Origin: Corallochytrium limacisporum Hawaii
Lineage: Eukaryota; Protista; Pluriformea
Assembly (NCBI GenBank): GCA_002811645.1
Contig: PDIP01000028.1
Location: 194,939 to 258,938 of the forward strand
Length of the DNA: 64,000 nucleotides
Direction: 5' to 3'
The position numbers and the translations under genes were made by a program. This document shows positions 24,531 through 46,144 of this stretch, in pieces. Every line of letters starts with the position of its first letter. The first letter of the stretch is position 1. Below the pieces are notes generated by a model, which was not told the origin of the DNA, made no database searches, and worked only from the letters and a program-made list of their open reading frames with translations.

Positions 24531-24538
24531 GGCGCTTC

Positions 24539-24552: not shown

Positions 24553-24646
24553 CTTTTCTTTTCTCTTTCGTTTCTCTCTCTTCGTTTCCTTTCCCCTGTT
24601 TTTTTTTTGGGTTCCCTTTTGGACCGGGTTACCTACGTGCACGTCC

Positions 24647-25063
24647 TTGGGTCTCAACTTTAGGACCATTCCTGACATGGTAGAGGCCTACCAAAAGCTC
24701 AGAGTGCCGAAGGAGACTTTGACGCTGATCCCTTCGCAGTTTGACACACCGCAGCCTTGGCTGGAGCCGGTGGTCTTTGATCCGGAAATAGTCGAGTTAC
24801 CATCGCCGGCCATGGACTTGTTCGACCTGGACACACATTTAAGCAATGACCTCTCGAAACTTGCGCAACTGACGAACAAGTGCACCAATAGTGACCCGGA
24901 GTTCTGCATCATTGAGTGTGGCAACATCCTCGGCGTGGCATGTGAGATACCACTGGACAAGCAGACCAATGCCAAGGCCATTATGGCGCACATCCTTCGA
25001 TCTGTAATTGACTATAAGAAACCGCTCACTTTGAGACAACAGGAGCAACGTCAACTAAACTAG
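24647..25063 (+). pseudogene. IFT52: C-terminal fragment of IFT52 (IFT-B core), lacking the N-terminal GIFT domain; a truncated gene or pseudogene
   Basis: 'AYQKLRV..ETLTLIPSQFDTPQP.LEPVVF.P...ELPSPAMDLFDLD......KLAQLTNKCT..D.EF.I.ECGNILGV......NAKAI..HI...VIDYKK' matches the remembered IFT52 C-terminus (QFETPLP..QPAVFPP, LELFDLD, LAQITNKC). The tRNA lies directly upstream, leaving no room for the rest of the gene. First ATG at 24677. Confidence 0.8.
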
Positions 25064-25195
25064 TTTGTGCCAAACCAAAGGAAGGAGAACAGGAAAATTT
25101 CTATTTTGTCATTTGTTTGCTTTTCGGTACCAGGATTCTTTGCCTACCCCTGCAAATCGGTTGTCGCGAGGCATGTCACTGCAGTGTTGTTTCAT

Positions 25196-26209
25196 TTACT
25201 TCTCAACGCCGTGCTTCGCGTACAGCTTCTGGACCTCTTCGACATCCTCGGGAGAACCCAGGAAGATGGGACAGCGATCATGGATGTGCTCAGGCTCCAC
25301 GTCCAAGACGCGGCGGCTGCCAGTGACGGCCTTGCCGCCGGCTTGCTCGCAGATGTAGGCCATGGGGAAACCCTCATACAGAATACGCAGCTTGCCCTTT
25401 TTGCTCTTGGAATCACCTGGGTACATGAAGATGCCACCGTATAGGATTGTACGGTGCACATCCGCGACCATTGAACCAATGTAACGCAGGGACTTCGGCT
25501 TGTCCTTGCACGATGCAATGTACTCCAGAGTTGGCTCGTCAAAGTACTTTGTGTTACCCTCGTTGATGGAGTAGACCTTGCCCTTCTTGGGGATGCGCAG
25601 GTTCTCGTTCACCAGCACGAACTCACCGATTGACGGATCCAGAGTGTAGGAGTGTACACCATGGCCGTAGGAGATGACAAGGTTGGTTGACGCGCCGTAC
25701 ATTGCGTAACCGGCGCATACCATCTCAGATCCCGGCTTGAGAACATCCTTAACATCCGCCCCGGCCACATCCTCAACGTGGTAAACTCCGAAAATGGTGC
25801 CAATGCTAACACCAGCGTCAATGTTTGAGCTACCATCAAGCGGATCGAAGACAACGCAGTAAGCACCGGGAATACCCTCCTGAAGATCCTTGACGAGGAT
25901 GGCTGTCTCCCGTTCCTCGCTGACCATCACACTGACACGACCACTGGTAGCTAGGGCATTCACGAAAACTTCATCAGCCAGCACATCGAGCTTCTTCTGG
26001 TCGTCACCGGTGGAATTTTGGGTCATGCCAGTGGCCAAGCCAGTCAGGCTGATGACGCCAGCCTTGCGCACGGCATTGGAGATGTACTTGCAGGCGAGTT
26101 GGATAGAGGCCAGCAAGAGGGTGAAGTCACCACTACCCTTGAACTTCTGCTGTTGAGAAATGGTGTGACGGGTGAGCGTCACCAGATTGGTTTCCAAGCT
26201 TTCTGCCAT
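25196..26209 (-). CDS. FBP1: Fructose-1,6-bisphosphatase class I
   Basis: Motifs NSTGDDQKKLDV, VSEE, FDPLDGSSNID, SIGTIFG, YSINEGN, RYIGSMVADVHRT, GKLRILYE. Confidence 0.97.
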   Translation of the reverse strand: MAESLETNLVTLTRHTISQQQKFKGSGDFTLLLASIQLACKYISNAVRKAGVISLTGLATGMTQNSTGDDQKKLDVLADEVFVNALATSGRVSVMVSEERETAILVKDLQEGIPGAYCVVFDPLDGSSNIDAGVSIGTIFGVYHVEDVAGADVKDVLKPGSEMVCAGYAMYGASTNLVISYGHGVHSYTLDPSIGEFVLVNENLRIPKKGKVYSINEGNTKYFDEPTLEYIASCKDKPKSLRYIGSMVADVHRTILYGGIFMYPGDSKSKKGKLRILYEGFPMAYICEQAGGKAVTGSRRVLDVEPEHIHDRCPIFLGSPEDVEEVQKLYAKHGVEK

Positions 26210-27513
26210 GACTACTGACTTGTTGTGCGGTGTTTACCCTTTGTAAACAGTATCACCCAGGGCCCTTTGCCCGTGAAGACCAGTTCCGATGGGAGCCTCC
26301 TTTGTACCTGGAGTCGAAAACCAAAAATAATCCCCGTCAACGGCACATTCCATGCATCACCTCCTGAAAGCCAAGGAACAACCACAGAACAAAATAAATC
26401 AACAAAGTCGCTCGCACGCCCGACGGCCGAAGTCCTCCGTGCTCAACTGGGCCCCGATCTCGCTGGAGGGCATTCTCGTGCGGCAGAGAGAGAGAGAGAG
26501 AGTGAGACAACCCCTCCCCTGGGGGCGGGGGGCTCGCAAGCGCCCAAGAAAAGGACCAACACAGTGGGAGAAGAAACAAGAAAAAGTCCCCGTCAGCTGC
26601 CCATTTTTCGTTATGCCCATTGCCCTTTTTGAAACCCGCTGGCATCCTCTGGCCCTTTTATCCGCAAGGAACAAAAATAACACAGCGCAGACAAATCGAA
26701 AACACACAACAAAGCTGGATCAAGTCCACGGGAGCTTACGAGCCTGGGGATGGTCTCACAGCGGTATCCAATGGGGGACCCTGGGACCAAGTTTCAGAGC
26801 GGCCTGGGTGGCTTTTCATCACCACCATCGTAACGAGTTTCGTCATCGAAGGTCGCGTTCATGAACCCGAGATCCTGCACACCCTTAGCATGGTATCTCA
26901 TACATGCACATGCCTACGCTGAACTGTGTTACGTTTGACATGCCAACACCGTTGCGCGGTTAGTTCTATCCAGTTGGCTGGCACAATCAAAGTTGTTGCT
27001 TGTCTGTGCCGGACTGCATTCCTGAGGTGTAAGTTCACACATACTGCGAACGTCTCTCCTCCCTCCGTGAAAAAATGGGCCCCCGATACCTAGAGTTCTC
27101 TGAGTGAAGAAAAATTTTCACGGCCAGGCCGGCCCGTTCAGCTAGCTCATTTAAAATATTCCGTATATAAATATTAAGGTATTTATTTAACTTAGTTCAT
27201 AATTTTATTAATATTCAGTATATCAAATATCAACTTGCTCCCACCCCTGCAGAGAAGGCACGGAACGGGGAGGGGCGAGCGTCTGGAGTCATATTTTTTT
27301 CACCAGTCCCCAACTTTGTGAACAAGCTAAATTGCCGTACCACTCTGGGTGCCACACGCTATACCACCGTACTTTTCACCAGGGGCCTGTGCTTAGTGAA
27401 ATCTGAAATCTGGACTCCGGTGCTTTCGTGGTTTTGGCTTGCTGCGCTTGGCGGTGGGATGTGTTTGAACCATTATTTTAATTGGGGGCCGGGAGTCGAG
27501 GAGGAAACGGAAG

Positions 27514-27592
27514 NNNNNNNNNNNNNNNNNNNNNNNNNNNNNNNNNNNNNNNNNNNNNNNNNNNNNNNNNNNNNNNNNNNNNNNNNNNNNNN
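27514..27592. other. Assembly gap (79 N)
   Basis: Run of n characters. Confidence 1.
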
Positions 27593-28791
27593 GGGGGAGA
27601 GGGGGGAGAGAATGCTCGGTAATTATAGGTGGGTGTGTTCCTGCATTTCAGTAGTTGCGGCCCCTTACATACAAAGTCAGTAGAGCCAATCAATCGGTTG
27701 TGAAGCGACCGACCAGGAATTTATTCCAAGGGGGGTTGCAAGTCATGGCACGCACACGCAGCATGCGGCACCGGCAGCAGCGGCAATAGAAGTCAGTAGC
27801 GGCAGTTGTTCACCGGAAAGGCCCATGTAATGTCCGCGCTGCTGCGAATACGGACGGAAACCATGAAAAGGAATGAAATGGCACAAGGACCAGGCAGTTG
27901 AGAGAGCTCGGAGCGATCGGAGGTGAGCGCGAGGGAAGTATGGAACCTTCTCCTCCCCCCGGGGAACTGAGGAGCAGAGGGGGGGGGAGGGGTGGAGTCA
28001 GTGGAAGGGACCCGGTACGCTGCAGAGCAACGGGGCCGGGATTAGGAACCCGGGGGAACGAGGTGGGTTAGTAGGACGGAAGGAACCATGTTGGCTCCCT
28101 CTGTGCAATTGTACACTCACCCCGTCAGAGCTCTACCTTCTCCTCGCCTTCTCAATCTTCCCGTCTACAAATTCCGTGAACTACAATTAGCGGAAATCCC
28201 GCCTTTTTTACCATTTTTTAGCTGATGATTTGACCGTTCCATCGTCGTTGTTCTCCTTCCTCCTCTGCTCATAAATTTTTCATGACTTTTGTTCGTCAGC
28301 GATCGTCTCCAAATTATCCCAAAAGGCAACCAGCGCTAATACACTTATCATAATGAAATTGACCGAGAGGAAAGGGTAGGGCATTCCTAGGGACCAAGGG
28401 AGATCGAAAGGGAGAAGCATTGGCCAAAGGACAGATGGTGCCGATCTGACACCGACCGCACGTAAGCAGTCTGGTGTGGAGACCAATTTTAAGAAAATGG
28501 TTTAGGAAGGACAAGGATGACCATGTGATTTATGTGATCTAGCAGTTACGCCCGTTGTAGTGGCACATAAGGTACGAAAGAACATCGGAACAGAAGATGA
28601 CCTCCTTTCCTTTGGCCAGACACGTTAGGAACACATTTAATACAAACAGGGTGGCGGGATATATAGCCAGAGTGTATGAGAATGACATGACGAAGCAAGT
28701 ACAGTAACGGGTCTAGGAGTAAAGAACAGACGTGAACGTCTAGAGATAGAACAGGAAAACTTATTGAAATCCGAGGCTGGCAGTCCGTAGA

Positions 28792-31254
28792 ATGGCAGAG
28801 CGGCCTGAGAGACCTGCACCGGCTCCTCCTGGGCCAATGGCGCCAATTCGGCCGCCACCTTTGGCTTCTCCCACACTGCCTGGAGACAAGCGCAAGGAGT
28901 CGCTGCGGTCTACAGCCGATTCGGCTGCTACCTACCCGCAGCGGTCGTCTCTAAACAGTCTGTTCGATGCCCAGGGAGTATTCAACCACAGGCGTGTGGA
29001 GAGTGACATGTCACTAGACGAAAACGGGAATCGCAAGATCCCAATGTTGTGCGATGCGGTGCTGTTGATTGGGTTACCCTCCAATGTGTCGCAGGATAAC
29101 CCGCTACCACGCCAACCGCAGATCTTGAAAATGTTTACCCGCCCGAATTCATCAGATGAGGAGCTCGAGGTCTTGCGCAACCTGGCCATATTTTGCTACC
29201 CGGACGCAGAGATCTGGACAGATCCTATCAATCTGTACCCCTCAGAGGAGTTCAGCTTTGTCCTCACTGACTTTCGGGGTAACAAACGGTTTGGGTATTG
29301 CCGTAGATTCCTGCCAAGGGGGGAGGGGCCTTCCATACCGATCACATACTGTATCGTTAGCAGAGGATCAGCACTGTCGCTATATTCCACGATCTTGCAG
29401 CGCCTGGAGCTCCGCAGAGCCGTCAGTTCCGAACACAGCAATGCGCTGGCCGCAAGACTTCTCGAACTCCCGTTCCCAGGCCGGGGACAGAAGATGATTG
29501 TAGACATGAACGTCGGTTCCAGCCTCAAGAGAAGCACTCGGGAGGACAACGAGTACGACCAGAAACAGGTGTACATGTTTGAACGGAATCGTGAATTAGG
29601 GGCTTACGAACATGTTGACCTTCACGACCTCTTCACGAGTCTCAGTCCAAATCAGTTAGTCGATCTGCTACTCGCCGTACTTTTAGAGAAGCGTGTCTGT
29701 CTGTTAAGCGTAAGCATCAGTGCCTTGAGCAGTAGCGTCCATGCAATTGTGGCGCTACTCTACCCTCTACGCTGGCAGCACACATACGTGGCTGTTTTGC
29801 CTACCCCAATGAAGGACTACCTAAGTAGTCCCGCACCCTTCATCATCGGCTACTTGGGTAGCCAAAATATCCTCGGATCAGTATTTGAGACCATGCTGGA
29901 GCACATAGAAGACGGCAGCGGTAGGACTCTCGAACAGCGTTGTTTGGATGATCCACCGGATGACCATGATGTGTTGGTGGTGGACTTGGATAAGGGTCGG
30001 ATGTGGACCCCGTACACATTCTACTCACGGGTCCAACGACAGCGAGATTCAGCGGCTGTTCTGAGCGAGTGGAAATCAACATCCGCCCTGCCTGCAGATG
30101 TTGAGGCGCAGAGACTGTCCCAGGCGAGCAAGGCATCTGCGGGCACCACGGGAACCGATACTTTGTCTACGGGTTGGAGTACACGCGCGAGCATTTCCAC
30201 TGGTAACATTCCCAGGGCAGTGGGCGAAAGCAAGGCCGCCTACGGCTCCGACTTATCATCCACCAGCAGCTACCTTCCTCCGAGCAACTTAATCGAATTC
30301 CCGAAGACACCGCGGTCTTTGCTCGAACGCAATTTCTTTGCTCCAACCATTCATCTGAGCACCAGTCCCAGCGCTTCGGGTTCGCTGCGGGATAGCCTGG
30401 GTGTGTTGAGTCGCAAGTCCATGGCGTCCACTGCAGGCAGCGCGAGCTCGAACAGTATGAACCTAGAGATTTTTGACTCTATTTGCCCTGGCATTGTGCG
30501 GCTTCTATGTGGCATTGACACGGCTTTCGTGCGCGATAGCACGTCGGGCTTCTATCACTGGGATCGCAACATATTTCTGAGGCGCTACAGTGGCAGTGGT
30601 ATCGAACCAGGTGCCTACCAGTTCATGTCCAAATTCACGCAGACGCAAGCATTTGATGAAATGATCTTGGAACGGGAACACTTAATGAACACGCGCAGTG
30701 AGTCCGCTGGGGGCAATGGAGGGCAGGAGGCTCTTGATCGCCTCATGGATCGATACAAATTTAGCGCCGAAGACGATATAATGCTCATGGCGGAGAAGAC
30801 TTCCTCGGCCGCCCGCTTGACGTCTCGCGTGCGCAACATGCTTTCCAAGGCTAGCATTCGACCCCGCAGCAGGGAGGATTCGGATGTTGCAAGTATTGAC
30901 AGCAACAGCAGTGGCAAAGGCCAGCAGAACGGCAATGCGCCTTCCAGCCCCCGGTTGCTTATAAAGAGCAAACTTGGGACCGCCGGATTCTTTGGATCGT
31001 TTGGACGGCGCAAGAACACTGGGGGTACCGTTCCGAGTGTGCAGACTGACCCTATGCAAACCCACGACTCTGACGACAGCCTCGGCGCCGCCGTTCAGAC
31101 CCGCATCTCCGCACCTGAACGGCCTCCGCCACCAGAGGCACCGAGTGTCGCGGTGATCCTGGACGACCCTGCCGTCCCACTGGAACAGAGTAGCAACCAT
31201 AGATTGTCGGTAAGACCACCGAATCCGCCCCCCATGGCCCCGAAAATTGAATGA
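28792..31254 (+). CDS. Tripartite DENN-domain Rab GEF (DENND1/2-like)
   Basis: uDENN (FCYPD..FSFVLTD..GNKRFGYCRR), cDENN (LLEKRV..S...LSS.VHA..ALLYPL.WQH.YV.VLP....YLSSPAPFIIG; VVDLD) and dDENN (FMSKFTQTQAFDEMI). Confidence 0.92.
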   Translation: MAERPERPAPAPPGPMAPIRPPPLASPTLPGDKRKESLRSTADSAATYPQRSSLNSLFDAQGVFNHRRVESDMSLDENGNRKIPMLCDAVLLIGLPSNVSQDNPLPRQPQILKMFTRPNSSDEELEVLRNLAIFCYPDAEIWTDPINLYPSEEFSFVLTDFRGNKRFGYCRRFLPRGEGPSIPITYCIVSRGSALSLYSTILQRLELRRAVSSEHSNALAARLLELPFPGRGQKMIVDMNVGSSLKRSTREDNEYDQKQVYMFERNRELGAYEHVDLHDLFTSLSPNQLVDLLLAVLLEKRVCLLSVSISALSSSVHAIVALLYPLRWQHTYVAVLPTPMKDYLSSPAPFIIGYLGSQNILGSVFETMLEHIEDGSGRTLEQRCLDDPPDDHDVLVVDLDKGRMWTPYTFYSRVQRQRDSAAVLSEWKSTSALPADVEAQRLSQASKASAGTTGTDTLSTGWSTRASISTGNIPRAVGESKAAYGSDLSSTSSYLPPSNLIEFPKTPRSLLERNFFAPTIHLSTSPSASGSLRDSLGVLSRKSMASTAGSASSNSMNLEIFDSICPGIVRLLCGIDTAFVRDSTSGFYHWDRNIFLRRYSGSGIEPGAYQFMSKFTQTQAFDEMILEREHLMNTRSESAGGNGGQEALDRLMDRYKFSAEDDIMLMAEKTSSAARLTSRVRNMLSKASIRPRSREDSDVASIDSNSSGKGQQNGNAPSSPRLLIKSKLGTAGFFGSFGRRKNTGGTVPSVQTDPMQTHDSDDSLGAAVQTRISAPERPPPPEAPSVAVILDDPAVPLEQSSNHRLSVRPPNPPPMAPKIE

Positions 31255-31314
31255 AACAGGTCAGTAGTTAATAAAGGACAAGTTATGTAACAATACCACT
31301 GGGTTTCTTTTCAC

Positions 31315-31830
31315 TTATGACTTGTGCTTCAGTAAGACAGCTTTGTGCAGTTCAGCAAAGACGTTCTTCATATTTTCAAAACTGAGCTTCTCCAGAGTCT
31401 CCTCATACGTGCACCAGGAGTACGCTGAAATCTCCTGCGCCTGTACTTTGACATCTTCTTGGTCAGCCAACTGCCCTGCCCAGAACTCACTGATCTTAGG
31501 GACTGTTCTTCCATTCCCCATAGGTTTCTGATACTCAACCTTGAAGGTGCCAAGGTCCTCGTGAATGGTGAGCTTATCCTGTGTTAACCCAGTCTCTTCC
31601 TCAAACTCACGAATGCCACTGTCCTTTGGGCTCGCGTCAGTGGCCTCTGGGTATCCTTTCGGAAATCCCCAGTGGCCGCCACGCCTGTCTTTCAGAAGAA
31701 GGTAACTGATTGCAAAAGATCCGTTACCAAGCTTATTGGCCACAAATGGAATCACTCCGTAGGCCCGGTGCATGGCTCCGGAATCATCTGCTGGATTTGT
31801 AATGTTCTGCTGCTGATTCTCCTCTGCCAT
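31315..31830 (-). CDS. NUDIX hydrolase, Ap4A-hydrolase-like
   Basis: HWGFPKG.PE......GIREFEEETGL Nudix box and EISAYSW. An alternative upstream ATG lies at 31848. Confidence 0.85.
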   Translation of the reverse strand: MAEENQQQNITNPADDSGAMHRAYGVIPFVANKLGNGSFAISYLLLKDRRGGHWGFPKGYPEATDASPKDSGIREFEEETGLTQDKLTIHEDLGTFKVEYQKPMGNGRTVPKISEFWAGQLADQEDVKVQAQEISAYSWCTYEETLEKLSFENMKNVFAELHKAVLLKHKS

Positions 31831-32262: not shown

Positions 32263-33660
32263 TCAACAATCACCGACTTCAGCCGCCTCACTTGCCACTG
32301 AGCTACCACAGACTTCGTCGTGGACTCCCACCAAACTACTACAGTCGGAGATAATGTCCCATGACTCACGACTGGTCTGCTGTCCACCGTTATTACTGCT
32401 CCCACCGCCGGTTCTCTGCTTGATGAACTGCGACAGTGTCCGCAGATCGTCCTCAGTGAGCTGCGAGATAATATCTGCGGTCCGCGGCGTGCCAGTCTCC
32501 GAGAAAGACGGTGGCGTCGGCACCACACCGTCCAGGCACGGTGGGCCGTGCAGTGACGTAAGTTGTGAGACAGTGTTCCGTCCTTGCCCGTATCCTCCTC
32601 TGCTGCCGCTCTTCATGCTGTGTTGTGGAGATGCAGACGAGAGCCGACCAGACCCGCGACGGCGGCCTGGATAGGCGGCAGTAGCCTCGTTCTGGCCAGC
32701 CCAGGCGTAATGTAGTGTTTCCCTCCGCTCCGAGGCATAGTGCGCAATCTCTCCTACCCCCGCGGAAGGTCCGCTGCCGTAGCCACCGAGCAAGGAGGCC
32801 AGCGCGGCAAAGAACCCGGAGCCCATGCCCGAGGAATCATAACCTTCCGGAAAGCCAGCGTCCGCATTCTCCAAACGGTCGTTCAGCAGTGCTTCTGCAC
32901 CACATGCCATTAGGTATTCGTGCTCAATCTCACGTAGATACTTCTGTTCCTGCTTGTTTTGGTTCCGACGAATGATGTGGCACACTTCCTTGATCAGCTC
33001 AGGGTCAATGTCATTGCAGTCTAAATCGAGACGAATAAGCGAGTGGTTGTGTGCACTGAGCAGTCGAATTAGCGACCTGCAGCTCTGGTCGTTGAGGTCA
33101 TTGTCGACGAGGTTCAGGCGCTGCAGTGAAGTGTTGGCCCTGAGTGCGTCAACCAAAGCGGCACATCCACGGGAGTCGATATTACATTGGCTAAGATCCA
33201 AGTACCGAATACTCCGGTTGTACAGGAGAAGATCCCCAATCGCAGCCACCGCCTCAGGCCCTATTGTGTTCCCTGCCAAGGTCAGCCGCCGAATCCGTGA
33301 GTTACCTCTCAGGGCCTGACAGAGCTGCTTAATTCGCAGGGGATTAAGTGAACGCCGACTTAGGAACAAATGCTCACCAATCTCAGCACTACTGTTACGG
33401 AGTTTGTTGAGATAATTGTTCCAACGATCGTTCTGAGCTGCCACGTCGTTATAAACCCGGTTTCTGCAGCCCTTGGACGAGCTTTCAGTTCTCATGCCTT
33501 TTGAAATGTCAATGGCACGCTTGCAGTCGTCACGCGTGACTTCTGCCTGAGCTAAAACGCTCAAAGGGGGCATGCCCTGGGCGCCCACTTTCTGATCTCC
33601 GATACTGCTCTCATTCGAGAGTTCACCGGGCGGTCTCGCTCTGTCGTCAAACTTTAACAT
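32263..33660 (-). CDS. RNI-like leucine-rich repeat protein
   Basis: About four 28-aa repeats (NSRIRRLTLAGNTIG, NRSIRYLDLSQCNID, NTSLQRLNLVDNDLN, NHSLIRLDLDCNDID) followed by a disordered C-terminus. Confidence 0.85.
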   Translation of the reverse strand: MLKFDDRARPPGELSNESSIGDQKVGAQGMPPLSVLAQAEVTRDDCKRAIDISKGMRTESSSKGCRNRVYNDVAAQNDRWNNYLNKLRNSSAEIGEHLFLSRRSLNPLRIKQLCQALRGNSRIRRLTLAGNTIGPEAVAAIGDLLLYNRSIRYLDLSQCNIDSRGCAALVDALRANTSLQRLNLVDNDLNDQSCRSLIRLLSAHNHSLIRLDLDCNDIDPELIKEVCHIIRRNQNKQEQKYLREIEHEYLMACGAEALLNDRLENADAGFPEGYDSSGMGSGFFAALASLLGGYGSGPSAGVGEIAHYASERRETLHYAWAGQNEATAAYPGRRRGSGRLSSASPQHSMKSGSRGGYGQGRNTVSQLTSLHGPPCLDGVVPTPPSFSETGTPRTADIISQLTEDDLRTLSQFIKQRTGGGSSNNGGQQTSRESWDIISDCSSLVGVHDEVCGSSVASEAAEVGDC

Positions 33661-36521
33661 TGTTGCCACTACTTTGTTTCGATCTTCGCAACCTTAGTCC
33701 ATAATTCTTCTTTCAGGCCAAGGTGTTCGTATGTTTCTCGCGACTAGTACAGAGTACACATATGTAACAAGTAAAATATAATTGATAAATAGTAATAACT
33801 ATTGTTGCCTAAAACATTGACTAAACTGGATGCTAACGATTTCGAAATACCTGACTTTTCCCGGTCTATGAGATGCAAGAACTAACCGTCGACACAAAAC
33901 AAGAGTCACTTCCCCAATGGAATTGTACAAAAACACCGTACACAAGCAGTCTTCGGTGATAAAGAAGTCCACAGAGCTTCGAGCAAGCATGTCATGAATG
34001 AGAGTGAGAACACAGACTTTCAGCACGTAACGTGCTCCAAGGCTGTCCCGTACAGCCGCTACCATGAACGCAGGTGAGTAATGGGAGACTAAGAGAAAAT
34101 CCAAACTCCGGCAGGCGGGTCTTTTCCCTCTGCATATTCTTTTCCTCCCGCCCTTCGCTTCGCGCATTTTCCACTGACCAATGTACTGCACTCTCTTCTG
34201 CGCTTTGCCCGAAAGTCGCAACAAAGGGAAAACGACCGCAGCATTCCCTGACCGGCGCAGCGAGGACACAAAAAAAAAAAAATGAAAAGGAGTCGTTGCG
34301 GAGAAGGGCGAAGAATCAATTCAAGAGCCGAAGGGGTCACAAACTACGCGCGCGCGGTCTGCTCTTACTCATTCGCCCGTTCGGCTGATCACCATCTACG
34401 GCGCTCCCCAGTGGCCAGTTTTGTAAACCAAAGGAGAAAATAAAAAGTATGCCAGGCCTTGCAAAATGGAACGTCTTCTTCTCCCTCTGGTGACACACAC
34501 ATACAGACCCGCCCTGGACACCTCCCCCGTCCCTTTGCTTCGCAGCAGTAGGAACAACGGTTAAGATTCCTTGGCCCAAAACCCCAGCCGTCTGCCAACA
34601 ACCAACCACTCGGCTGATGCACCTGTCAGAAAGGAGCAGCCAAAAAAGAACCCACAGAAACAACCGGCACATAACTCTTAGTCTTGTCGTTTCCCTTGCG
34701 CGGCAAGGGAATTTTATTCGACATCCTCCCATCCCTTCACTGGGATACCGCTTTGGTTGTTTGACCCGTGGGGACCCCGACACGAATGACGGCGAATTGA
34801 CTAGGAGACTATGTTTGGGTCCTTGCCTGCCGTGTGCTTGTTTTGTGCTCCTATTGACTCTTACTTTCACTTCCTCCCCGTGCTCCCCCTTCCCTCCTTT
34901 TCCCTCTCGCACAAAACCCCTCCCCCCTCCCCCAACAAAACTTCTAATTCGTTCCTAACAGAAATCTTGCAATTCTGAACACTCGAAATCACATCATTTC
35001 CTGCCCCTGCCTCCTTGCCTTCTCCGTAAAACTCTGTCTACTTCACTGCTTGGTGGTGCTGTATTCACCAACTCCAGTGTTATATACTGCTGCCAGTATA
35101 GTCGATTTATACACAAAACATTCACCTATCGTCCGTACGAGTTACTCTGGCGGCCGGGCGGAGTGCGCGCTGACACACACAGTCCGAGTGTGACCAACAC
35201 AGAAGCAGCTCTCGCCTGTGAGCTCAGCTCACCGGTAACACACACACACACACACCCCTCTTCGCTTCCTGAGCTCTGGCTGAATATTAATATATTTAAT
35301 ACCGCGCAGTTGCAGCGGGTGAGAGAAGCGTGGTCATTCCACAATCGATTTGTTTTTCCCAGACCCGCAACAGAAATAATTCGAAACGTTAATCCATGTT
35401 CCGACCCTACGCGACCTTCCCCCTTTGTCCGTTCCCATACCCAATCACCTCATTTGTCCGGATCACTCGTGTGCATGCCGTCTGTCTTGGATTTTTTCTG
35501 CAACCGCAACAAGTTCCCCCAGCAGAAGCTGGCAGACTGGGCGCACATGCATTCAGTAGCCACTGTTGCGGTGGACTGGATGGTATCCAATGCTTGCGCA
35601 CCCGGCGTCTGTGGCTGCCCGCTTAATCGCATGTGACGGAATGGAAACGACCAAACCGTTTGCACACTATTTTGGATGTGTCAACCTATAATGCGCGACA
35701 AAGGAGCGGAACAAGCGAACCTAACCACCGTGCGCCGGGTGTATATTCGAACCGCCCACAGCGGTAGGTAAGGCGCGCAGGTACTACATGGTCGAGGCGT
35801 CCGAGCACAACAACAGTGGGCTACTAATATCGATTCGATGCATCTGTGGGCTTGTAAACTCCATCTTTTAACACAGCGAAAACAGAAGAAATACCGTTGC
35901 TCATCTCAAGAAATTCAAATACGCCGCACCTTGCCGAAGTCGGTTGGGCGGTGGTGATACTCTGCAGAGCGCAAGTATTGATGCTTATCCTCCAACGGGG
36001 CAGGTGTTCGCAACAGGCCGACTACCATGCGCACAAGGAACAGCTAAAAACTTAGAGGACGATTATCATCTGGTGGAATCTCTGTCCCCAATTTCACTTC
36101 CCAGCTGGCAGAGCTGCAGTATTCCCGGACATACTATCAGCCGCGCAAACGAAAAGGTCACCGCAACCTCATGTCGATGCCAATCTCTTCACCACAGAGC
36201 GGGAGAGATGTTTGAGTGAGCTTAATTTTCACTGTTCTTGGAAACCGGCCCCAAGTTCTTTTGTTTGTCATTACATGACATCAGTCTCTGGTAGGCAACC
36301 TCCCCCTCCCCTCCCCCCAGCCAAGGCAACCGAGGTACGGAGGAGATTGTGACATACGGGCCTGAGAAACCATTTCGGAGCCATCAGAGTTCCAAAGAAC
36401 CGCTCACAGGGTGTTGATCCCAACTAAATCACACCAGGCTGATGTCCATCAGTTCCTCACTGCTCAGCAAGCACAGAGTAAGCCACAATCAATAAAACAA
36501 GTATGAGAAGAATGAGACGAG

Positions 36522-37739
36522 CCCATTAAGATGCTAAAGTATGGTTGCTATTAAGCCATGCCAAAGAGCCCGCCTTTGGGGGGTACTCTGCCGAAGACCT
36601 GGTCCTCATGCAGAACAAACTCGACGATCCCGAACGTATGGAGTACATCGGGCTTGAATTAAGCAAGGCAGAGTAAAACATTAGAAAAGGAGCCTTTGAC
36701 GAGGCTCTGGTGGGAGTTCGTGGAGTAGCAAAGTACTTGTACGGCCGAGGAGAACATCGCGCTGCAGCTGAGTTCTTTGGCAAGGCTGTAGCCATCGTGG
36801 GACTGGAAGCCCCTGAACGAGGAATGCAAGGCCCGCTACGCTTCTGAGTTGGATTATTGCTCGCAGTTTCATTCACACAGGAGACTCCAGCCAGGCTGTG
36901 GGACACTGTAAGGAAGCCCACCACCCTGGCGATGGGGGATGCCCGGAACATCAGCGGTGACCGAACATCATTGGACGCTGGCGCCCTGTACGATGCATGT
37001 CAATTATTGGATGATGCGCTGTGGAATGAGGCTCTAAATGGACCCGAAGCGGATTGCAAAACAGACAGTCTACACCATGTCCTCGCACGTGCCAGTGACA
37101 TTGCTTTCGGAGGCCCCGCGCGAGGCTGGCTTGCCCGAGATTCTTTTCCGTCTCGGATCATTCTTCCAGACTCGCGGAGAATACAAGAAGGCCCAGTCTT
37201 CTTTTGCCCAGGCTAGCGATTTACCAATACCCGATGCAATTGAACGGGTACCCGCAGAATGGCCGCGCCTGTATCTGTCGCTCGCTCGGTCCATTATCGA
37301 CTCGGACATTGACCCATTCGGAAGATCGATGTCCCAGATGAACGTTGATGATAGTCGGATGGGTTTGTCCAACGCACCAGTTGGTAAGGCGCATCAACTT
37401 GTTGACCAGGCTGTTAAACTCGTTGACAATGTACAGGATGAGAGGAACGATTCTGAACAGAACCAGCGTCTACTCATACTACAGGAGGCCGGTCAGTTGA
37501 TGAACCGTCTGGGCCGTACCGACGAAGTCAATTCTCTTCTGCACAAAGTGCAGGATGAGGCTGGTGGCACTTCTGCATGCAATGCTATCCAGCGGGTCAT
37601 TGCTCTGGATCTAATCGTGGCTAGCACAGATACGATTTTTGCGGCCTACGCAGCAGCCTGCGGCGGTGTGGATGACGAATGCCTGGTACGTTTGGTGAAC
37701 TTCAAGCTAGGCTTTAACCATGATTTTGCCATGTCATGA
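36522..37739 (+). pseudogene. Disrupted TPR gene resembling the flagellar protein TTC29
   Basis: Protein-like segments in shifting frames: IKMLKYGCY* (TAA 36552); MQNKLDDPERMEYIGLELSKAE*NIRKGAFDEAL..VAKYLYGRGEHRAAAEFFGKA (TAA 36674); LLSWIIARSFIHTGDSSQAVGHCKEAH; ALYDACQLL; ILFRLGSFFQTRGEYKKAQSSFAQA; ...DDECLVRLVNFK. About four frameshifts and two in-frame stops. The TTC29 assignment rests on remembered sequence. Confidence 0.6.
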
Positions 37740-38840
37740 CCCAAGGCATCCACCAAGAGCAACGACCAGTTCGTCGTCAAACTACACATGGAACTTCATT
37801 CCAAGAAACTGGCTTCGACTTCTCCAAAGAGAGGGATGACGCATGGAAGTGCTCGCTACTACCGGATTGGCCTAGAGGCTGGTGGGGGTGACTGGTTGCT
37901 CCCTCCGTGCCGAAAGTAGTTCTGCGACTCTTGTATTAACATAACATATAGTAGAGAATTCATACCAATTCCCCGTATTCTGAAGCTTTTTCGAACAGAG
38001 GGAGCAACCAACCAACCCCCCCAACAAAATGGGAGTGCCCCCCCCGGAGGGGGGGGGGTTTTGAAAGAACTGTGCTCTGGTAGAAAACATTCCGCTCGTT
38101 CTCCTCCTTGGTTTGCGGGCCATTTCCTAATTCTTGTGAGGGTACCGTAGGTCTAGAGGGAATCCCCCCCTTACATTCTCAATTTCGTATCTTAAGAATC
38201 TTGTTGGAAGTGGTAGTTGCTGGTTGGTTTGGTCTTTCATACAAGACGAGGCAAGGAAATCAAAACACCCCCCCCCCATGCAAAGACGTACGCAAGCTAC
38301 TATTGGCTTCGTCCGCCTTCTCCCCTTACCACTTCCCAATGTCGCACAAGTGAAAATTGGAAAGCCCCACCACGGCACGGTTAATGATGATGAACCTTGC
38401 GCACGAATCACACCGTCACACAGCGGAGATAGAGGAAATAAGGGAGGGACGGTACCGAGGCGCAGTGTCCTTGCACAGTCCCCTCATCTGGGGGTGCTCC
38501 CTGTGCTGACACTATGGCAGGCCCGGTTATATGTACAATGGTGACACAACCATGAGATAGGTCATTGAATGCCTAGTTTTGAAGCACTCAGCTTTGTTGG
38601 TGAATCTTCGGACAACTTGTGTCCTGCGTTTGGATCAGGTCGGTAAGTAGTTGAGGTTATGCTACTTCACGGCGAGCAAGTCTTTGAGGAGTGGGTGAAT
38701 ATTGACTCCACCGGTTGTGCAAAGACAGAGAGTTCTTACGTCACTATATCCAAAGGTATCCAAGTTCTTTAAAAAACTTCGGCACACTTCCTGTCACATC
38801 TGTCCACTGTAACAGAAACGGAGATATCAAATTCAGAACG

Positions 38841-39626
38841 ATGAACGGAGTTGAACGATTGGCTGGTAAAGTTGTGCTTATCACTGGCTCGTCTGCTGGC
38901 ATCGGTGAAGCTGTTGCCCGCATTCTTGCCCCCCATGGTTGCAAACTGGTGCTTGTAGCCCGTCGTCGTGAGCGCCTTATTGATCTGAAGGAGCAGCTCT
39001 CCAAGCTCACAAGCGCAGAGAACATTTTCATTGAGAAGCTCGATGTTACCGACGGTGCTGCGGTGGAAAAGTTTGCTAATGAGGACCTCCCTGAGCAATT
39101 CCGCAATGTTGACATTCTCGTGAACAATGCCGGTGGTGCCCATGGCCTGGACCGAGTCCACGAGGTGCAGGACAAGGACCTGCAGACCATGATTGAAGTT
39201 AATGTTAAGGGTCTATTGTACATGCAACGTGCCTTTGTGCCCGGAATGATTCAGCGCAATACTGGCCATGTGATCAACATTTCTAGCATTGCCGGCCGCA
39301 ATCCCTACCCTGGAGGAGGTGTGTACTGCGGTACCAAGGCCATGGTCGACTCCATCACCTCTGCCTTGCGTATGGAACTGGTGAAGACAAACGTAAAGGT
39401 TACGTCCATTGCGCCTGGAATGGTGGAGACAGAATTTTCGATGGTGCGCTTCCACGGAGACAGTGAAAAGGCGGCGAATGTGTACAGAGGTTTAGAACCT
39501 CTTGGACCTGAAGATATTGCCGACAATGTCCTGTACGCCGTCACGCGTCCCGTACATGTTGTTATTGCAGACATGCTCGTTTTGCCTAATTGCCAGGCCG
39601 GCGCATACCACATCCACAAAGCTTAG
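38841..39626 (+). CDS. Classical SDR, YdfG/YMR226c-like NADP-dependent 3-hydroxy-acid dehydrogenase
   Basis: TGSSAGIG, VARRRERL, LVNNAGGAHG, NISSIAG..PYPGGGVYCGTK, PGMVETEFS.VRFHGD..KA..VY.G..PL. First ATG at 38841. Confidence 0.92.
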   Translation: MNGVERLAGKVVLITGSSAGIGEAVARILAPHGCKLVLVARRRERLIDLKEQLSKLTSAENIFIEKLDVTDGAAVEKFANEDLPEQFRNVDILVNNAGGAHGLDRVHEVQDKDLQTMIEVNVKGLLYMQRAFVPGMIQRNTGHVINISSIAGRNPYPGGGVYCGTKAMVDSITSALRMELVKTNVKVTSIAPGMVETEFSMVRFHGDSEKAANVYRGLEPLGPEDIADNVLYAVTRPVHVVIADMLVLPNCQAGAYHIHKA

Positions 39627-40889
39627 CTGAATACTCGATTGACAATATGAGACGCAAATCAAATTGACATTAAAGTGATTCATGTAAAGTACCTAAACTA
39701 AATTCAATTGGAAATTACAGTGGGTTCCCAAATTCAATTAGGAGAGTTGTATACTTTATCAAATAAATCTCCATTCAAAGCTTCACAGCAGTCAAAGGCT
39801 TATCTATTTAGGAAATATCAATGTGAGATCACAATAGAATCACAATACGTTTACTTGTAGTTGTTTGGATAGCTGATTTCCTCGAAATTGATCCTGTAGC
39901 TCTTAGTCAAATGTCCCAGGCGAACTTTTTGTTGTTGAGTGTCGTATGAATATCTGACTCATATTTCCAACGATGCACATGTAAACCGTTGACTGTAGAC
40001 ATTATACTCTATTTGATTTTGAAAGAATACGTATTTCTTATACAAAGAGGCTGTCATCCTCAGAGGAATTACGAGGGTATGTGTTTGGATAAGGGATCTT
40101 GGCCACTCTTGATCAGTTTGGAATTCCGTTGTGATGTTACGCAACATGTGACCATTGGCATATTCTTCAATTCAGAAACGGATCAAGAATTTGGTCAGCA
40201 TTGTTACGGTAGTTTGTTTTACTAATGTCGTGGACAAGCTTCCTTTCTGAATTTCGCCCAATGTGTTTTTGACCACCTCCTCACTGTTAGCACTGGCGAT
40301 CCAAATAGACTCCCGCGTCCGCGTTGCCAAAGGGGCCAGGGGACTACTGCCCCGCTCACCCTTTAACAGTCTTACCCCAACTCGCACCCGCTCCACAAAA
40401 TGCCTTCTATATCCAGGCTGTTACAACCGTGCAGCCCAGGCTCCATATAACCCACCCCTTACGGATAGGCGGCGAACCAACGCTCCTTTTGAAGGGGTCA
40501 ATGACTGTATGAAGCCGAGAGCAAAGAAGGCTCACAGGCGAAGGAACGGGGAGCGGGCGGGGGTCCCATTCCAGAACAAGTCAACTCGGAACCAACTGCT
40601 TTCAACCAACTAATTCTGAGCGGGCGGCCGGGTCGATGTCACATTGCTAAATGGAAATATTATCAAGGTAAAATCTATTGCGCAGCCAACCCGCAAAAAG
40701 AAAGAAAAGGCGGTGACGTCCCCCTCGCTGATAAACTGGGGTGTCACGGTCAGTCGAGTGGAGTTCGATAAGTAATAGTGCGCACAATGGACTGGCCGGT
40801 GTTTTCAATTTTGCAATACAGGATGCTACTTAGGTGAATCTTTTAAATGGTCTTTCAGGAGCGGAAAAATTCGAAAATTGTATACGTAC

Positions 40890-41546
40890 ATGAATATGTG
40901 TCTCCGTAAAAGTAATGGTGTGGCCATCGGGTCAAATACAGAAATGCTTGGGGATCGCGTCACTTCTGGACCTGGCGCACCGTCCAACCCAATAGATACT
41001 GACAGACATTCTGAACTAGACGTGGACGCAGCCTATAGGTATAGGGATGCTTTAGGAAGAGATTCCTATGGACGGAGGGGTGCAATGGTACCCGGCAACT
41101 TTGAATGGTCAGCGCTCGCAGCGGTACGTGACGAGCTTGAGGAATTGCCCCCCGACGAAGCTGACAGAACGGAAATTTGCTTTGGAGACGTAGTCTACCA
41201 CGAAGGAAATCCAGTACGAGCCACGATCAAAGATACTATGCACGACATTGGCAACGAAACTAGTCCCCTGGATTTGAGCGCCGACAATGACTCTGGGCTG
41301 GGAGGCATTGAAAGCACACCGCAAGAAGGACCGCCCACGGAGATGTACTCCACACCGATGACCTGGAACGGCAGCATTAACCACGGTAGGGAGCTTTATC
41401 AATATTTAAGTGGCAATGATGGAATTGAGAGACGGTTCCGTGATGTCACCCTGCACAGTGTGACGAGTCTGACTGGTGACGGAAGTCAGCGCATGTCGAC
41501 AGCTAGCGGGGGTTCTTCAGGGTTGCCTTTGAACAGAAATGGATGA
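40890..41546 (+). CDS. Hypothetical acidic protein (~218 aa)
   Basis: ORF with protein-like composition, convergent with WDR35. No domain recognised; start codon uncertain. Confidence 0.5.
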   Translation: MNMCLRKSNGVAIGSNTEMLGDRVTSGPGAPSNPIDTDRHSELDVDAAYRYRDALGRDSYGRRGAMVPGNFEWSALAAVRDELEELPPDEADRTEICFGDVVYHEGNPVRATIKDTMHDIGNETSPLDLSADNDSGLGGIESTPQEGPPTEMYSTPMTWNGSINHGRELYQYLSGNDGIERRFRDVTLHSVTSLTGDGSQRMSTASGGSSGLPLNRNG

Positions 41547-41770
41547 AATCTCAGTGCAAGAAACACAATTTTGAAACCAAGCTATTGTCATTTTGTTAAA
41601 GAAGCTCAAGCGCATACAGACACTGCAATCGAATAGACCACTTATCTGTAACATAAGTAAACGGAATGTGTTCACCATCACAATCACAATACAACACAGC
41701 ATCCCCATACACTTAACAGCACATATATATATTATCGCTTGCTAATCCAATTGAGGAAATATGGCTGCCA

Positions 41771-44700
41771 TCATTCCTGCTGTTCTCCGCATAGCCGACA
41801 GGTCCAGTCACCACTGTCACCCTCCGTTTCCTCCCAGTGTGCACATTGCCAACAACGGCGCAAACCATCTATGCGACGCCAACCTCGCGGGCTAGCCAGG
41901 TGCTCGCTGCTACGGTCCTTCGGCGTGCACGCTCCCACAGCTAAAGGTCGACCAGTCTTCATTGATGGCGGGAAGACAGCGTTGCAGCCAGGACAAAGAT
42001 AGGTTGTCATTGGGAACGAACTCTCTGGCTCGGTGGCACGCAAGCCGCAGGCTCCACAGGATGCTTGGAATGTATTGGGTACCAATGTAGGCCCCGAGAG
42101 CTGTGTGGAGGACCGCAGTGGGGTTTCATCGTTCATCCGAGTCTCCTCCATGACGGCCAGCTTGAAGCTCTCTACAAGTGTGCGGACGTTCTGTTCGTTT
42201 GGTCCGAGCAGCTGCGCGGCGAGATCACTTGCATCCGAGAGAAGCTCTGCTGGACGGTGCCTACCACTGCCACCCTTCAAGATTTGCTCATCAATAGCCA
42301 CCGCAGTGCCACTGGCACGTAGTACCATCCGTGCACGGAATAGGGCCCCGTGACAAGCTGAGATGTTTCCAGAAGCGTAGGCACTGATAGCATGTAGTAC
42401 ACAGAGCCCAGTCTCTGGCAGAAAGTCCGGGTAGCGGTGCAATCCGCAGCTCACAATGTATGCGGCCTTGAACTGATGGTCCAGGAGCAATCTACTGAGT
42501 AACCCGAGCAAATGACAGGCCTCTGCCCGGCGGTACAGTAAGGCGGACTCCCGCGGAAGCAAGTTCAAACCGTATTGATGGCCTTCCATGGGTGGTGTCG
42601 CTCCGGCAGCACCGTCACCATCAGATTTGCTATTCGTACCTGGAGCGGCCACCGACTTCCCAGCAGCCTCTCCCTCGGCGACTACTGGCGATGAGCCACC
42701 TGAAGCTATGAGCGTGGCCAAGTTTGATACCTCAGAACCAGGTATGCTTTTGCCATACGACTCCTCGAACTTGCGAGCCATGCGACCGGCCATAATGTAA
42801 AGGCGCTTAAGCGTGAGAGGAACAGACCACAGTTCCTGTGGTTGTTTTGTGACCAAGTCGACAGCGATGTGACAGAGCAGCAGTGCAGCCTTGCCGTACT
42901 CCCCACTGCGGCGGTAAAAGTCCACGGCTTGCATAAAACTGCCACGGACGACTAGCTGATCGCCGTAGGCATTGAAGATGGTTTCAACATTGAGCACTGA
43001 GTACTTCTGAGCAAGTTCCATGGCGATATCTCCTCGATTCAAATCGCAGCAGGACGCGATTGCACGTTCGTAGGCTCTGCCTTTCTCGAAGGCCCGTACG
43101 GCGTCTTCGACCATACCCACACTCGCAAGCTTGTGGCCAATTTCACAGAGCAGAGATGTAGCTTGCGACGGGGTCAAAGCGAATGGTTTGTTCTCCTTCT
43201 GGCCGGCGGCATCGGCATCAATGAGAACAATGAGTTTGGCAATTTCATTATAGTCCTCCATCATGAAGTAGCACTGGCTTAGGGTCTGGTAATCCTCAGC
43301 TTTGCGAAGAGGCATAGTGGCCTTGACGTACTGCTGGCGATCCTTTAGGTACTCTCCTACTTTGCCATTGCAGTAGGGCACATTGGCAATGGACTGGAGC
43401 ATGCCATTGTTTGATTCTTTCACAGCTGGGTGATTAGCATAGTCCAGTACCAGCAGCTTCATTCGGAAGTAGTCACCTATCTTGTGACGCATGATTATGG
43501 CTAGGTCCGGCCTGGACGCGCGCACGAAAAGATTTTCTGCACGGTCAAAGCGGCGGCGGTGGACCTCAATCTCTGCGCGGCGTAGCATTTTGTCATCTAT
43601 TCCGCGGATACGCTTCACAATCCGCAGGGCAGCCAGGTCCTTACTTCGTTGATAACACCTTTGCGCGATGTCGAGACGTTCTTGGTCAAGAGACTCGTCT
43701 GCTAGCAATTTCCATAGCCGCGTGTGAGCGTGTTTTTCCACAAATGCCAAGACATCATTCAGAGTAATAGGGTCTTGGTCCCTGCTGATGCCACTGGCTT
43801 TGCGCAGTAATTCGCCGCATTGGCGCAAAGAGGCTGAGTCCATCTTCACTATGGCATCCAAATTAGGTCGCGTTGGATTACTCAAAATCTCATTCAACAT
43901 GACTATCTTAATGTTGAGATCAGTAAACGCACAAACATGCCCACTGCATAGATATTCTTCCAGTTGGTTCACATTCCGACTAATGTATAGTTTGTTCTTA
44001 GCCATATAGATGAAGAGGCCAGGATCGTCAGCCGCCCAGGTCACGTCCCAGACATCCGGGACCTGCCAAGCCCGGGATCTGCTGCCGTTGTCGGAGGTCG
44101 GTTCTTCGAGCAGCCGACCAATACGAGTCTTCGATGCAACTTTTCCACTCTGCTTTTCATCGTGCCGGGTCTGTCCATTGCTTACCGATGCCACTAGATC
44201 GTCATCCAGCAAACAGAGAAACAGGGAATGATTGTTGGTGATCAGTGCCAACTGTGTGTCATTGCAGTTAAGAGCAATGTGGTACACAGGTGTTCTGAAG
44301 TCCTGCCTAGCCACGGGTTGGCAGGACGGGAGAGAAAATGCAGTCACAATCCCTCCCTGCCGTGCGACGAGCAGCAGATCATTGCTCACTGCGAGACAGA
44401 CGATCGGGTTGTCCGTTGGCAGCGGCTTGATGTCCATGGCCTGGTCAGGGCGCTGGAGCTGTTGGTCATCGATATGGAACAGGGCCTCCCACTCAATACC
44501 TGCGGTGTTACTGCTACTGTCGTGTGGACCACCACCCGATTCCGCCGACAGCGGCGAAGACCCGGCGCTGACCATGCGATGGCGGCAGCAGTAGACGAGT
44601 TCATTGCTGCCCGCAACAATCGTCTGATTTGTGGCACTTACGTCTATTGGCATGAAGGGCAGCAGAATCTCTAGCAGAGCAGCACCAATTGCATTGTAGA

Positions 44701-46144
44701 GCCGGAGCACGGCTTCACCACTGCCCAGTCCTTGCGGTTCAAAAGAAGTCTGTACGCCGCGCTCGGCCACTACACAGCACAAATTCCCCGCGCGCTTCAT
44801 AAAACGGAAACCTTCAATGCCCTTGAAGACAGCCTTACCTGTCACAGTATCAAAAAACACAACAATGTGCGAGCCGGGAGTGCGGTGCGGGCTTTGGAAT
44901 GAGTAAGACAGGATCTGTGCATCTGTCGGACCAAATACGCACGGTCTGTGCACCAGATTGACGTTGACCAAGAACAAGTTGTTACCTACGCTAACAGCTA
45001 AACGGTCGTCCCTAGCATGCCAGGCCACGTCTAAGGCAACTTCACCGGGTAGCTGCAGACTCCGAACATGGCCACCGTCCGCAGTGAAGAGTGAGACGAT
45101 TGCAACTTTGCTGTGCTCGATCTGTCCGCCTCTGTTGCGCACTCTACTATGCAGACTGCCGGTAATGGCCAGAAAGCGCCCGTCTGTGCTCCAACTGCAA
45201 TTGACACCGTCGCTGAGGCCGGTGTGGACTGCTTTGGCGGCGAAATGTGTGCCTCCTTCGGCCGTCACAGACTCGTCCTGCAGAGTGCGGGTGTGGAAAA
45301 GCACGAGGACCCCATGGTCTAGCAACAGTGCGACATTGTTTGAATAATCTCCAGAGCATTGCCGTAGGCAGCGGACAGAGTGCTTTGCCGCAATACCATT
45401 GCTGTCAATGCACAAATGTTCTGCCATTCGAAAGAGTCCCTTGCGCGCGGACAAGAACTTGCCGTCTGCGCTAGTGTAAGCAAGCAGAGTGCCATCCTCG
45501 CAAGCAAAGAGCAATCTGGTGTCATCAGTGTGCCAAAGAACCTGCATTATGTTCAAAACCGCTTTTTGATTGATGGGATCGTTCATAGTTTTGCCCCAGA
45601 TGCGATCCCCATCCCTGTTTCCAACCACGACAAGACCATTGGCCCATGCTAGGCAGATCATGGACTCGTCCGCAGACCAACACATGCCCCGAATTTTGCT
45701 GTTAATACGATCGTTGACCATTTCCTGGTACCAAGCACCGTTATGAAATGCCCACACAATGACACATCCATTCTCATCGGCACTAACCAACTTGCGGTGC
45801 AAGTGATTCCAGACGACTGTTGTAACTTCGCCTTTGTGGCCTTCCAGGGAAGAGTTCATTGCCACCGATGTTGGACTGGCATTACCCTCAGCAATCTTTC
45901 TTGCTTGAGCAGTGAGTTCCACGACATTCTCAGTTGCCTTCTCAGCCGTAGGTTCCAAGCGAATGACCCGCAGCATACCATTGTCACCACCCATGGCGAT
46001 CCATTCCCTGGACTTGTGCCAGGCCACTGCAGACACGCGGGTGCATTTCGGTACACCAAGTTTCTTTATCAATGCGAGATGAATTCGACGGGTGGGCACA
46101 GAGACTTGGCGCTCACCCTCTGCCAGGTTTCGCATGCTTGACAT
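41771..46144 (-). CDS. WDR35: WDR35/IFT121, intraflagellar transport complex A subunit
   Basis: N-terminus KKLGVP....VAWHK...IAMGGDNGMLRVIRLE...MNSSLEGH.G.V..VVWN....KL.SADENG..IVW....G.WYQEMVN.R...WSAD...GDRIWGK matches WDR35. WD propellers, a TPR-like solenoid and C-terminal CxxC zinc ribbons follow. Uninterrupted 1457 codons. Confidence 0.93.
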   Translation of the reverse strand: MSSMRNLAEGERQVSVPTRRIHLALIKKLGVPKCTRVSAVAWHKSREWIAMGGDNGMLRVIRLEPTAEKATENVVELTAQARKIAEGNASPTSVAMNSSLEGHKGEVTTVVWNHLHRKLVSADENGCVIVWAFHNGAWYQEMVNDRINSKIRGMCWSADESMICLAWANGLVVVGNRDGDRIWGKTMNDPINQKAVLNIMQVLWHTDDTRLLFACEDGTLLAYTSADGKFLSARKGLFRMAEHLCIDSNGIAAKHSVRCLRQCSGDYSNNVALLLDHGVLVLFHTRTLQDESVTAEGGTHFAAKAVHTGLSDGVNCSWSTDGRFLAITGSLHSRVRNRGGQIEHSKVAIVSLFTADGGHVRSLQLPGEVALDVAWHARDDRLAVSVGNNLFLVNVNLVHRPCVFGPTDAQILSYSFQSPHRTPGSHIVVFFDTVTGKAVFKGIEGFRFMKRAGNLCCVVAERGVQTSFEPQGLGSGEAVLRLYNAIGAALLEILLPFMPIDVSATNQTIVAGSNELVYCCRHRMVSAGSSPLSAESGGGPHDSSSNTAGIEWEALFHIDDQQLQRPDQAMDIKPLPTDNPIVCLAVSNDLLLVARQGGIVTAFSLPSCQPVARQDFRTPVYHIALNCNDTQLALITNNHSLFLCLLDDDLVASVSNGQTRHDEKQSGKVASKTRIGRLLEEPTSDNGSRSRAWQVPDVWDVTWAADDPGLFIYMAKNKLYISRNVNQLEEYLCSGHVCAFTDLNIKIVMLNEILSNPTRPNLDAIVKMDSASLRQCGELLRKASGISRDQDPITLNDVLAFVEKHAHTRLWKLLADESLDQERLDIAQRCYQRSKDLAALRIVKRIRGIDDKMLRRAEIEVHRRRFDRAENLFVRASRPDLAIIMRHKIGDYFRMKLLVLDYANHPAVKESNNGMLQSIANVPYCNGKVGEYLKDRQQYVKATMPLRKAEDYQTLSQCYFMMEDYNEIAKLIVLIDADAAGQKENKPFALTPSQATSLLCEIGHKLASVGMVEDAVRAFEKGRAYERAIASCCDLNRGDIAMELAQKYSVLNVETIFNAYGDQLVVRGSFMQAVDFYRRSGEYGKAALLLCHIAVDLVTKQPQELWSVPLTLKRLYIMAGRMARKFEESYGKSIPGSEVSNLATLIASGGSSPVVAEGEAAGKSVAAPGTNSKSDGDGAAGATPPMEGHQYGLNLLPRESALLYRRAEACHLLGLLSRLLLDHQFKAAYIVSCGLHRYPDFLPETGLCVLHAISAYASGNISACHGALFRARMVLRASGTAVAIDEQILKGGSGRHRPAELLSDASDLAAQLLGPNEQNVRTLVESFKLAVMEETRMNDETPLRSSTQLSGPTLVPNTFQASCGACGLRATEPESSFPMTTYLCPGCNAVFPPSMKTGRPLAVGACTPKDRSSEHLASPRGWRRIDGLRRCWQCAHWEETEGDSGDWTCRLCGEQQE

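Follow-up and report, generated by a model that had tools for sequence, protein, structure and literature searches.

Corallochytrium limacisporum has already lost its flagellum, contrary to the cryptic flagellate stage published for it, and every IFT-B, motor and transition-zone gene that could be detected in its genome is broken while four IFT-A subunits have stayed unbroken. The explanation that we consider likely overall, without regarding it as settled, is that after flagellum loss IFT-A has been kept by selection, probably as a membrane coat that is independent of cilia. What is new here is the tested contrast between intact IFT-A genes and broken IFT-B, motor and gate genes; modular loss of IFT was already known. 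The window, by which is meant the whole stretch of 64,000 nucleotides that was analysed, contains the following features.

24456-24531, forward strand: tRNA-Val(AAC) gene, then a T-rich tract (ARAGORN; sequence)
24620-25063, forward strand: 3' remnant of IFT52 (Pfam PF23352 and PF21178; similarity to other IFT52 proteins)
27514-27592, no strand: assembly gap of 79 N, intergenic, between the FBPase and DENN genes
36530-37739, forward strand: transcribed TPR pseudogene (TAA at 36674-36676, TGA at 36845-36847, frameshift within 37038-37213)
41771-46144, reverse strand: intact WDR35/IFT121, 1457 aa (Pfam, PDB similarity, RNA-type contigs)

Two sequencing runs were guessed to be RNA from contigs that are almost confined to genes, at depths of 3 to 280. 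The first of these RNA-type runs was identical to the window wherever it was covered and the second was about 0.5% different, from which it is inferred that the second run comes from the second known strain. The first-pass annotation had described an intact WDR35/IFT121 gene of 1457 codons, and this held up: the frame has no stop, Pfam recognised both propellers and the TPR domains (PF24797, E 2e-69; PF23390, E 4e-52; PF25170; PF25768), and the best PDB matches were IFT121/WDR35 chains (E 1e-123). The protein is enlarged by loop insertions and has four CxxC pairs in its last 100 residues (about 1360-1455), zinc binding itself being only presumed. The gene is also transcribed, with RNA-type contigs in both samples, one of 4543 nt at depth 51 in the run that differs by about 0.5% and coverage at depth 15 in the other, and isolate compared with isolate gave no difference over the 515 nt compared. 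Searches for WDR35 relatives that could serve for a tree or for dN/dS returned none.

The same annotation had IFT52 cut down to its last 135 or so codons, and Pfam, the point at which homology starts and the lack of IFT52 sequence further upstream all agree with this. Counted from an ATG, the open frame spans 24677-25063 (+) and has 128 codons, on which Pfam matched only positions 39-81 of IFT52_central (PF23352) and Itf52_C (PF21178). The central proline-rich segment and the C-terminal IFT46-binding domain are thus both present (Pfam; hhalign 99.8%), and the remnant is 35-51% identical to other IFT52 proteins. Because the similarity to metagenomic IFT52 proteins begins at 24620-24650, 5' of this ATG, the ATG at 24677 is an internal residue. 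Further upstream of 24620-24650 no IFT52-like sequence was found, and none of the GIFT domain upstream of the tRNA gene; the N-terminal GIFT domain had no match in the genome either, with PF23355 or with alignment A1. An intact IFT52 elsewhere had been named in advance as a refutation, and the search of the assembly found no second copy, 24620-25063 being the only IFT52 locus found; other assemblies that cover this locus were not found. The place of the missing 5' part is occupied by the tRNA-Val(AAC) gene, as seen in the assembly only, since the junction is without a read check. That the tail is free of lesions proves nothing, because under neutral decay a lesion-free IFT52 tail of 137 codons has a probability of 0.28. 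An IFT52 split between exons was rejected, since the similarity does not stop at the candidate AG (24662) and the search for a 5' part was negative. As separate observations, tRNA genes may bound deletions or shelter neighbouring DNA, and here tRNA-Val abuts the remnant, and the surviving piece resembles the C-terminal IFT52 fragment known from MDCK cells to act as a dominant negative on ciliogenesis (PMC4210449).

The TPR gene carries two stops and one change of frame in the overlap 37038-37213, and consensus error, which would have disposed of these lesions, does not account for them. The contigs of a DNA run were identical to the window across the gene at a depth of 195, and the main contigs of this run showed zero differences over 36300-42250 at a depth of about 200, although the run is possibly the source of the assembly itself. 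In the second RNA-type run a contig of 1413 nt is collinear with 36562-37975, keeps both stops and the frameshift and has no splice joint, and rescue of the stops by an intron or by editing is thereby ruled out. This contig also lacks one base at 36578, a less certain difference because it falls in a G run only 16 nt from the contig end. Between the samples there were four amino-acid-changing and three silent substitutions, too few for a test. The TPR gene is a transcribed pseudogene common to both samples. The annotation was therefore right about a broken TPR gene with real stops and a real frameshift, and its resemblance to TTC29 could not be confirmed as a name. TPR helical repeats were detected in the pieces of 36530-37739, with generic TPR similarity only; no TTC29-specific match was obtained when separate pieces were compared with phmmer (1.8 billion representatives), Pfam, the PDB (four pieces) and the ESM Atlas (two pieces), and two fold searches that started from an AlphaFold model of the product (single-sequence, pLDDT 51) likewise went no further than generic TPR. 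The pseudogene may be TTC29-like, which is plausible from its sequence although the name stays unconfirmed.

The neighbouring FBPase, DENN, NUDIX and SDR genes are clean by Pfam, just as had been claimed for the housekeeping neighbours. The gap of N lies 2.4 kb from IFT52 and outside all three genes; the distance of 21 kb spans it, without a read check of continuity, and that distance is all that the gap touches. The three flagellar loci within about 21 kb are real, and their clustering is not significant, for with 100-300 ciliary loci in the genome between 0.1 and 3 windows of 21.5 kb holding three such genes are expected by chance.

Genome searches were made on an assembly of 24.11 Mb in 286 contigs that is almost intron-free. 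IFT46 is broken by stops and a frameshift, IFT57 by a frameshift, IFT54 by a frameshift and an early stop, and KAP3 by several lesions. Most of the motor is deleted in the kinesin-2 on contig C171, and its neck motif was absent from all intact kinesins. Two B9-domain transition-zone genes are also broken. Among dynein heavy chains only one in the genome is intact, with an N-terminus that looks to be of the cytoplasmic type, and no intact axonemal or IFT dynein, dynein-2 included, was found; a second match to PF03028, on C182, was rejected as a dynein since it is midasin. The genome search did not find IFT172, IFT80, IFT81, IFT20, IFT38 or BBS9, and such calls are weak because the search misses diverged genes. 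A changed genetic code was rejected, as TAA, TAG and TGA stops and frameshifts all occur. A functional IFT train system would need intact IFT-B, kinesin-2 with KAP3 and dynein-2, and in the genome searches this set did not prove to be intact. The first-pass annotation had inferred a lineage that is losing its flagellum gene by gene; the broken IFT-B, motor and gate genes fit this, but the flagellum itself is already lost and only the erosion of relics is ongoing. Published figures for C. limacisporum are 24.1 Mb, about 0 introns per kb and 83.4% BUSCO completeness (PMC5560861). In spite of the nearly intron-free genome, the beta-tubulin gene (L015, contig C24) is interrupted by an evident GT-AG intron, branch site included.

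The other half of the contrast, that IFT-A was kept while IFT-B was lost, extends from WDR35 to the whole genome. The four COPI-like subunits IFT144, IFT140, IFT122 and IFT121 are all open, with 5,728 codons in total. IFT144 (1847 aa) and IFT122 (1187 aa) are intact; IFT140 is open at 1237 aa, about 230 residues shorter than in human, with similarity that ends near human residue 1047 and without the distal TPRs. The propellers of IFT144 and IFT140 have diverged so far that the Pfam models made for them no longer match; in WDR35 and IFT122 both propellers are well kept. CxxC pairs persist in IFT121, IFT122 and IFT144. IFT139 (PF25060) and IFT43 (PF15305) were not found in the genome, again weak negatives given that diverged genes are missed, and candidates for IFT139 on C111 and C77 proved to be unrelated TPR proteins, presumably CTR9-like and COPE-like. 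In seven relics about 17 lesions were counted in 1,820 codons, a count made by eye and biased to the best-preserved relics. At that rate about 50-53 lesions would be expected in the 5,728 IFT-A codons, about 14 of them in WDR35 alone, and 0 were seen (P about 1e-23, or 4e-8 at the rate of the mildest relic). This absence of lesions, with no dN/dS behind it, shows as far as reading frames can that IFT144, IFT140, IFT122 and IFT121 have been kept by purifying selection. Among the four genes transcription was shown for WDR35 only. The C-terminal zinc sites are known to stabilise IFT-A and to hold the complex together (PMC10066299).

Genes for centrioles are kept too. SAS-6 is intact, there are five intact tubulins including delta- and epsilon-type, and centrioles have been seen in C. 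limacisporum by electron microscopy (PMC11153136). Of two Tubby loci (L043 on C246 and L045 on C272), one is intact (489 aa from the first Met) and the other decayed. The intact Tubby gave no match to the N-terminal helix by which TULP3 binds IFT-A, and on these sequences the link of the known cargo adaptor (TULP) to IFT-A looks lost.

A probable course of events begins with a loss of the flagellum recent enough for relics to stay readable. Stops, frameshifts and deletions are shown to be wearing away IFT-B including IFT52, kinesin-2 with KAP3, the B9 genes and axonemal genes such as the TPR gene, all of them as unitary pseudogenes, a status that is only presumed for the TPR gene. The centriole genes would have been retained for a centriolar spindle pole. 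Human IFT-A is built from IFT144-IFT140 and IFT122-IFT121 pairs, and in trains the TPRs of IFT140 wrap the neighbouring complex (bioRxiv 10.1101/2022.08.09.503213); in Corallochytrium the same two pairs are inferred, and the four subunits probably still assemble by way of TPR dimer interfaces and zinc-binding domains, as the retained domains suggest. Their job would be one that IFT-A already does in animal cells without need of a cilium: to coat or tether Golgi-derived vesicles with beta-propellers and TPRs, perhaps close to the centriole. As there is no train partner, no IFT motor and no ciliary gate, a coat or tether is the most likely job remaining for IFT-A. The coat role itself nevertheless stays tentative, and we would place it slightly short of even, for it is inferred from architecture and there are no membrane-binding, localisation, interaction or knockout data. 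The wider proposal, that the whole of IFT-A is now a stand-alone coat without need of a cilium, a ciliary module that has naturally gone back to work as a protocoatomer where centrioles remain and IFT-B, IFT motors and transition zone are gone, is offered with somewhat less confidence again. The unmatched TULP helix, the decayed second Tubby and the loss of the distal TPRs of IFT140 count against a simple carry-over of the coat role, and relaxed selection could also produce both the diverged propellers of IFT144 and IFT140 and the short IFT140.

IFT-A could instead be under selection as a scaffold associated with centrioles or microtubules, or as a signalling adaptor, and not as a membrane coat. 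The persisting centrioles (PMC11153136), with SAS-6 and delta- and epsilon-tubulins intact, agree with this, the propellers of IFT144 and IFT140 that are the most diverged parts are the membrane-facing ones, and cilium-independent signalling roles are known in Drosophila (PMC6294004). The Drosophila role, however, needs kinesin-2, which is dead in Corallochytrium, and WDR35 and IFT122 keep both propellers well, so we regard a scaffold as unlikely. Slightly less likely still is a mere lag, in which selection let go of IFT-A after IFT-B and the complex, at present without a function, drifts. High divergence, the many insertions, the shortened IFT140 and the apparent loss of the TULP link are what drift would leave, but 5,728 codons without a stop or frameshift, the kept zinc ligands, the transcription of WDR35 and the identity of the isolates over the stretch compared are not. 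IFT-A is not known to have any ciliary function that survives the loss of IFT-B.

Two further explanations concern the relics and not IFT-A. The C-terminal pieces of IFT52 and IFT46 both keep an ATG-started open frame over their mutual binding domains, an IFT52C/IFT46C heterodimer is known (PMC4210449) and IFT52C is up to 51% identical to its relatives, so that these pieces might be a retained mini-module that works with IFT-A. We consider this very unlikely, because the rest of IFT46 is still present upstream and decays in place in the ordinary way, frameshifted and stopped; the lesion-free tail of IFT52 is no obstacle to neutral decay, as calculated above, and a codon-usage test was uninformative. 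It is hardly tenable, finally, that the cryptic flagellated stage is real and that the lesions come from faulty assembly, from introns or recoding, or from damage that arose in culture. This has on its side the published inference from the presence of transcripts (Torruella et al. 2015, as reported in PMC7147346) and the fact that genes can be missing from an assembly of such BUSCO completeness (PMC5560861). Against it, the TPR lesions stand in deep DNA coverage and, unspliced and unedited, in RNA from the sample that differs by about 0.5%. The lesions include all three stop types as well as frameshifts, the broken loci number at least nine, and the searches yielded neither an axonemal nor an IFT dynein that is intact.

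With IFT-A kept by selection as the preferred reading, the IFT-A of ciliated eukaryotes (IFT144/140/122/121/139/43) is the closest comparison; the first four of these subunits have orthologues here, with two propellers, TPRs and zinc-binding C-termini. Corallochytrium differs from it in having no intact IFT-B, kinesin-2 or B9 and no dynein-2 that could be found, and its subunits are enlarged and diverged, with a short IFT140 and an unmatched TULP N-helix. WDR35 and IFT-A have been given a coat role on Golgi-derived vesicles (Quidwai et al. 2021, PMC8754431), and this WDR35-dependent coat, like COPI alpha/beta', offers the same protein and fold and a proposed activity that precedes the cilium and is independent of trains; the mouse vesicles are, however, bound for the cilium, whereas Corallochytrium has no cilium and its coat activity is only inferred. 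Modular IFT loss during flagellum reduction is likewise described for Thalassiosira, which lost IFT-A, for Toxoplasma and Neospora, which lost part of IFT-B, and for Plasmodium, which lost both (Nevers et al. 2017, PMC5850483, citing van Dam 2013). In those cases a motile flagellum persists, whereas Corallochytrium has lost motility along with all of its detectable IFT-B and has kept IFT-A.

Molecular data had led to the proposal of a cryptic flagellate stage in Corallochytrium (Torruella et al. 2015, via PMC7147346). It concerns the same organism, in which sequences and transcripts of flagellar genes are indeed detectable, but many such sequences belong to pseudogenes with continuing transcription or with an annotation as short proteins. 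Both the 128-aa piece of IFT52 and the 233-aa piece formed by the last 233 codons of the TPR pseudogene are entered as proteins in EukProt, and therefore presence counts overstate the flagellar toolkit, which is what had been predicted for a cryptic flagellum counted in this way. The result contradicts the cryptic flagellate stage inferred for a relative of animals, and it shows how transcribed or annotated pseudogene fragments inflate presence counts. A literature search that left out most subscription papers and the 2015 study turned up neither a case in which IFT-A alone is kept nor a description of flagellar pseudogenes in Corallochytrium. Ciliated cells make it difficult to find out whether IFT-A acts as a vesicle coat outside the trains. 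In C. limacisporum, apparently a natural knockout of IFT-B, motor and gate genes with IFT-A kept, this question is directly testable, and stable transfection works in it (bioRxiv 10.1101/2020.11.12.379420). From the relics one can besides read off the dismantling of a flagellum in a cell that retains its centrioles.

Some minor observations remain. Not every cilium-linked family is dead, for a PACRG-family gene, PACRG-like by score, is intact (L065, C250:130244-130741). In the window, between the SDR gene and the next ORF, a frame at 39854-40270 (-) is broken only by two TGA codons (40172 and 39959) and is possibly a fourth relic; it had no RNA contig, and over the 188 nt that an environmental contig covers, three differences change an amino acid. 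It is faintly CFAP20-like, a reading that has no support from Pfam. Canonical CFAP20 of about 190 aa was not found genome-wide with PF05018, which gave only two long CFA20-domain proteins (on C246 and C171). The window also holds an intact LRR protein of 465 aa at 32266-33660 (-) and, at 40890-41543 (+), a transcribed ORF of 218 codons without a Pfam match. A 2021 DNA run labelled as another organism contains short pieces of the locus that are 98-99% identical, possibly a third, environmental sample of Corallochytrium.
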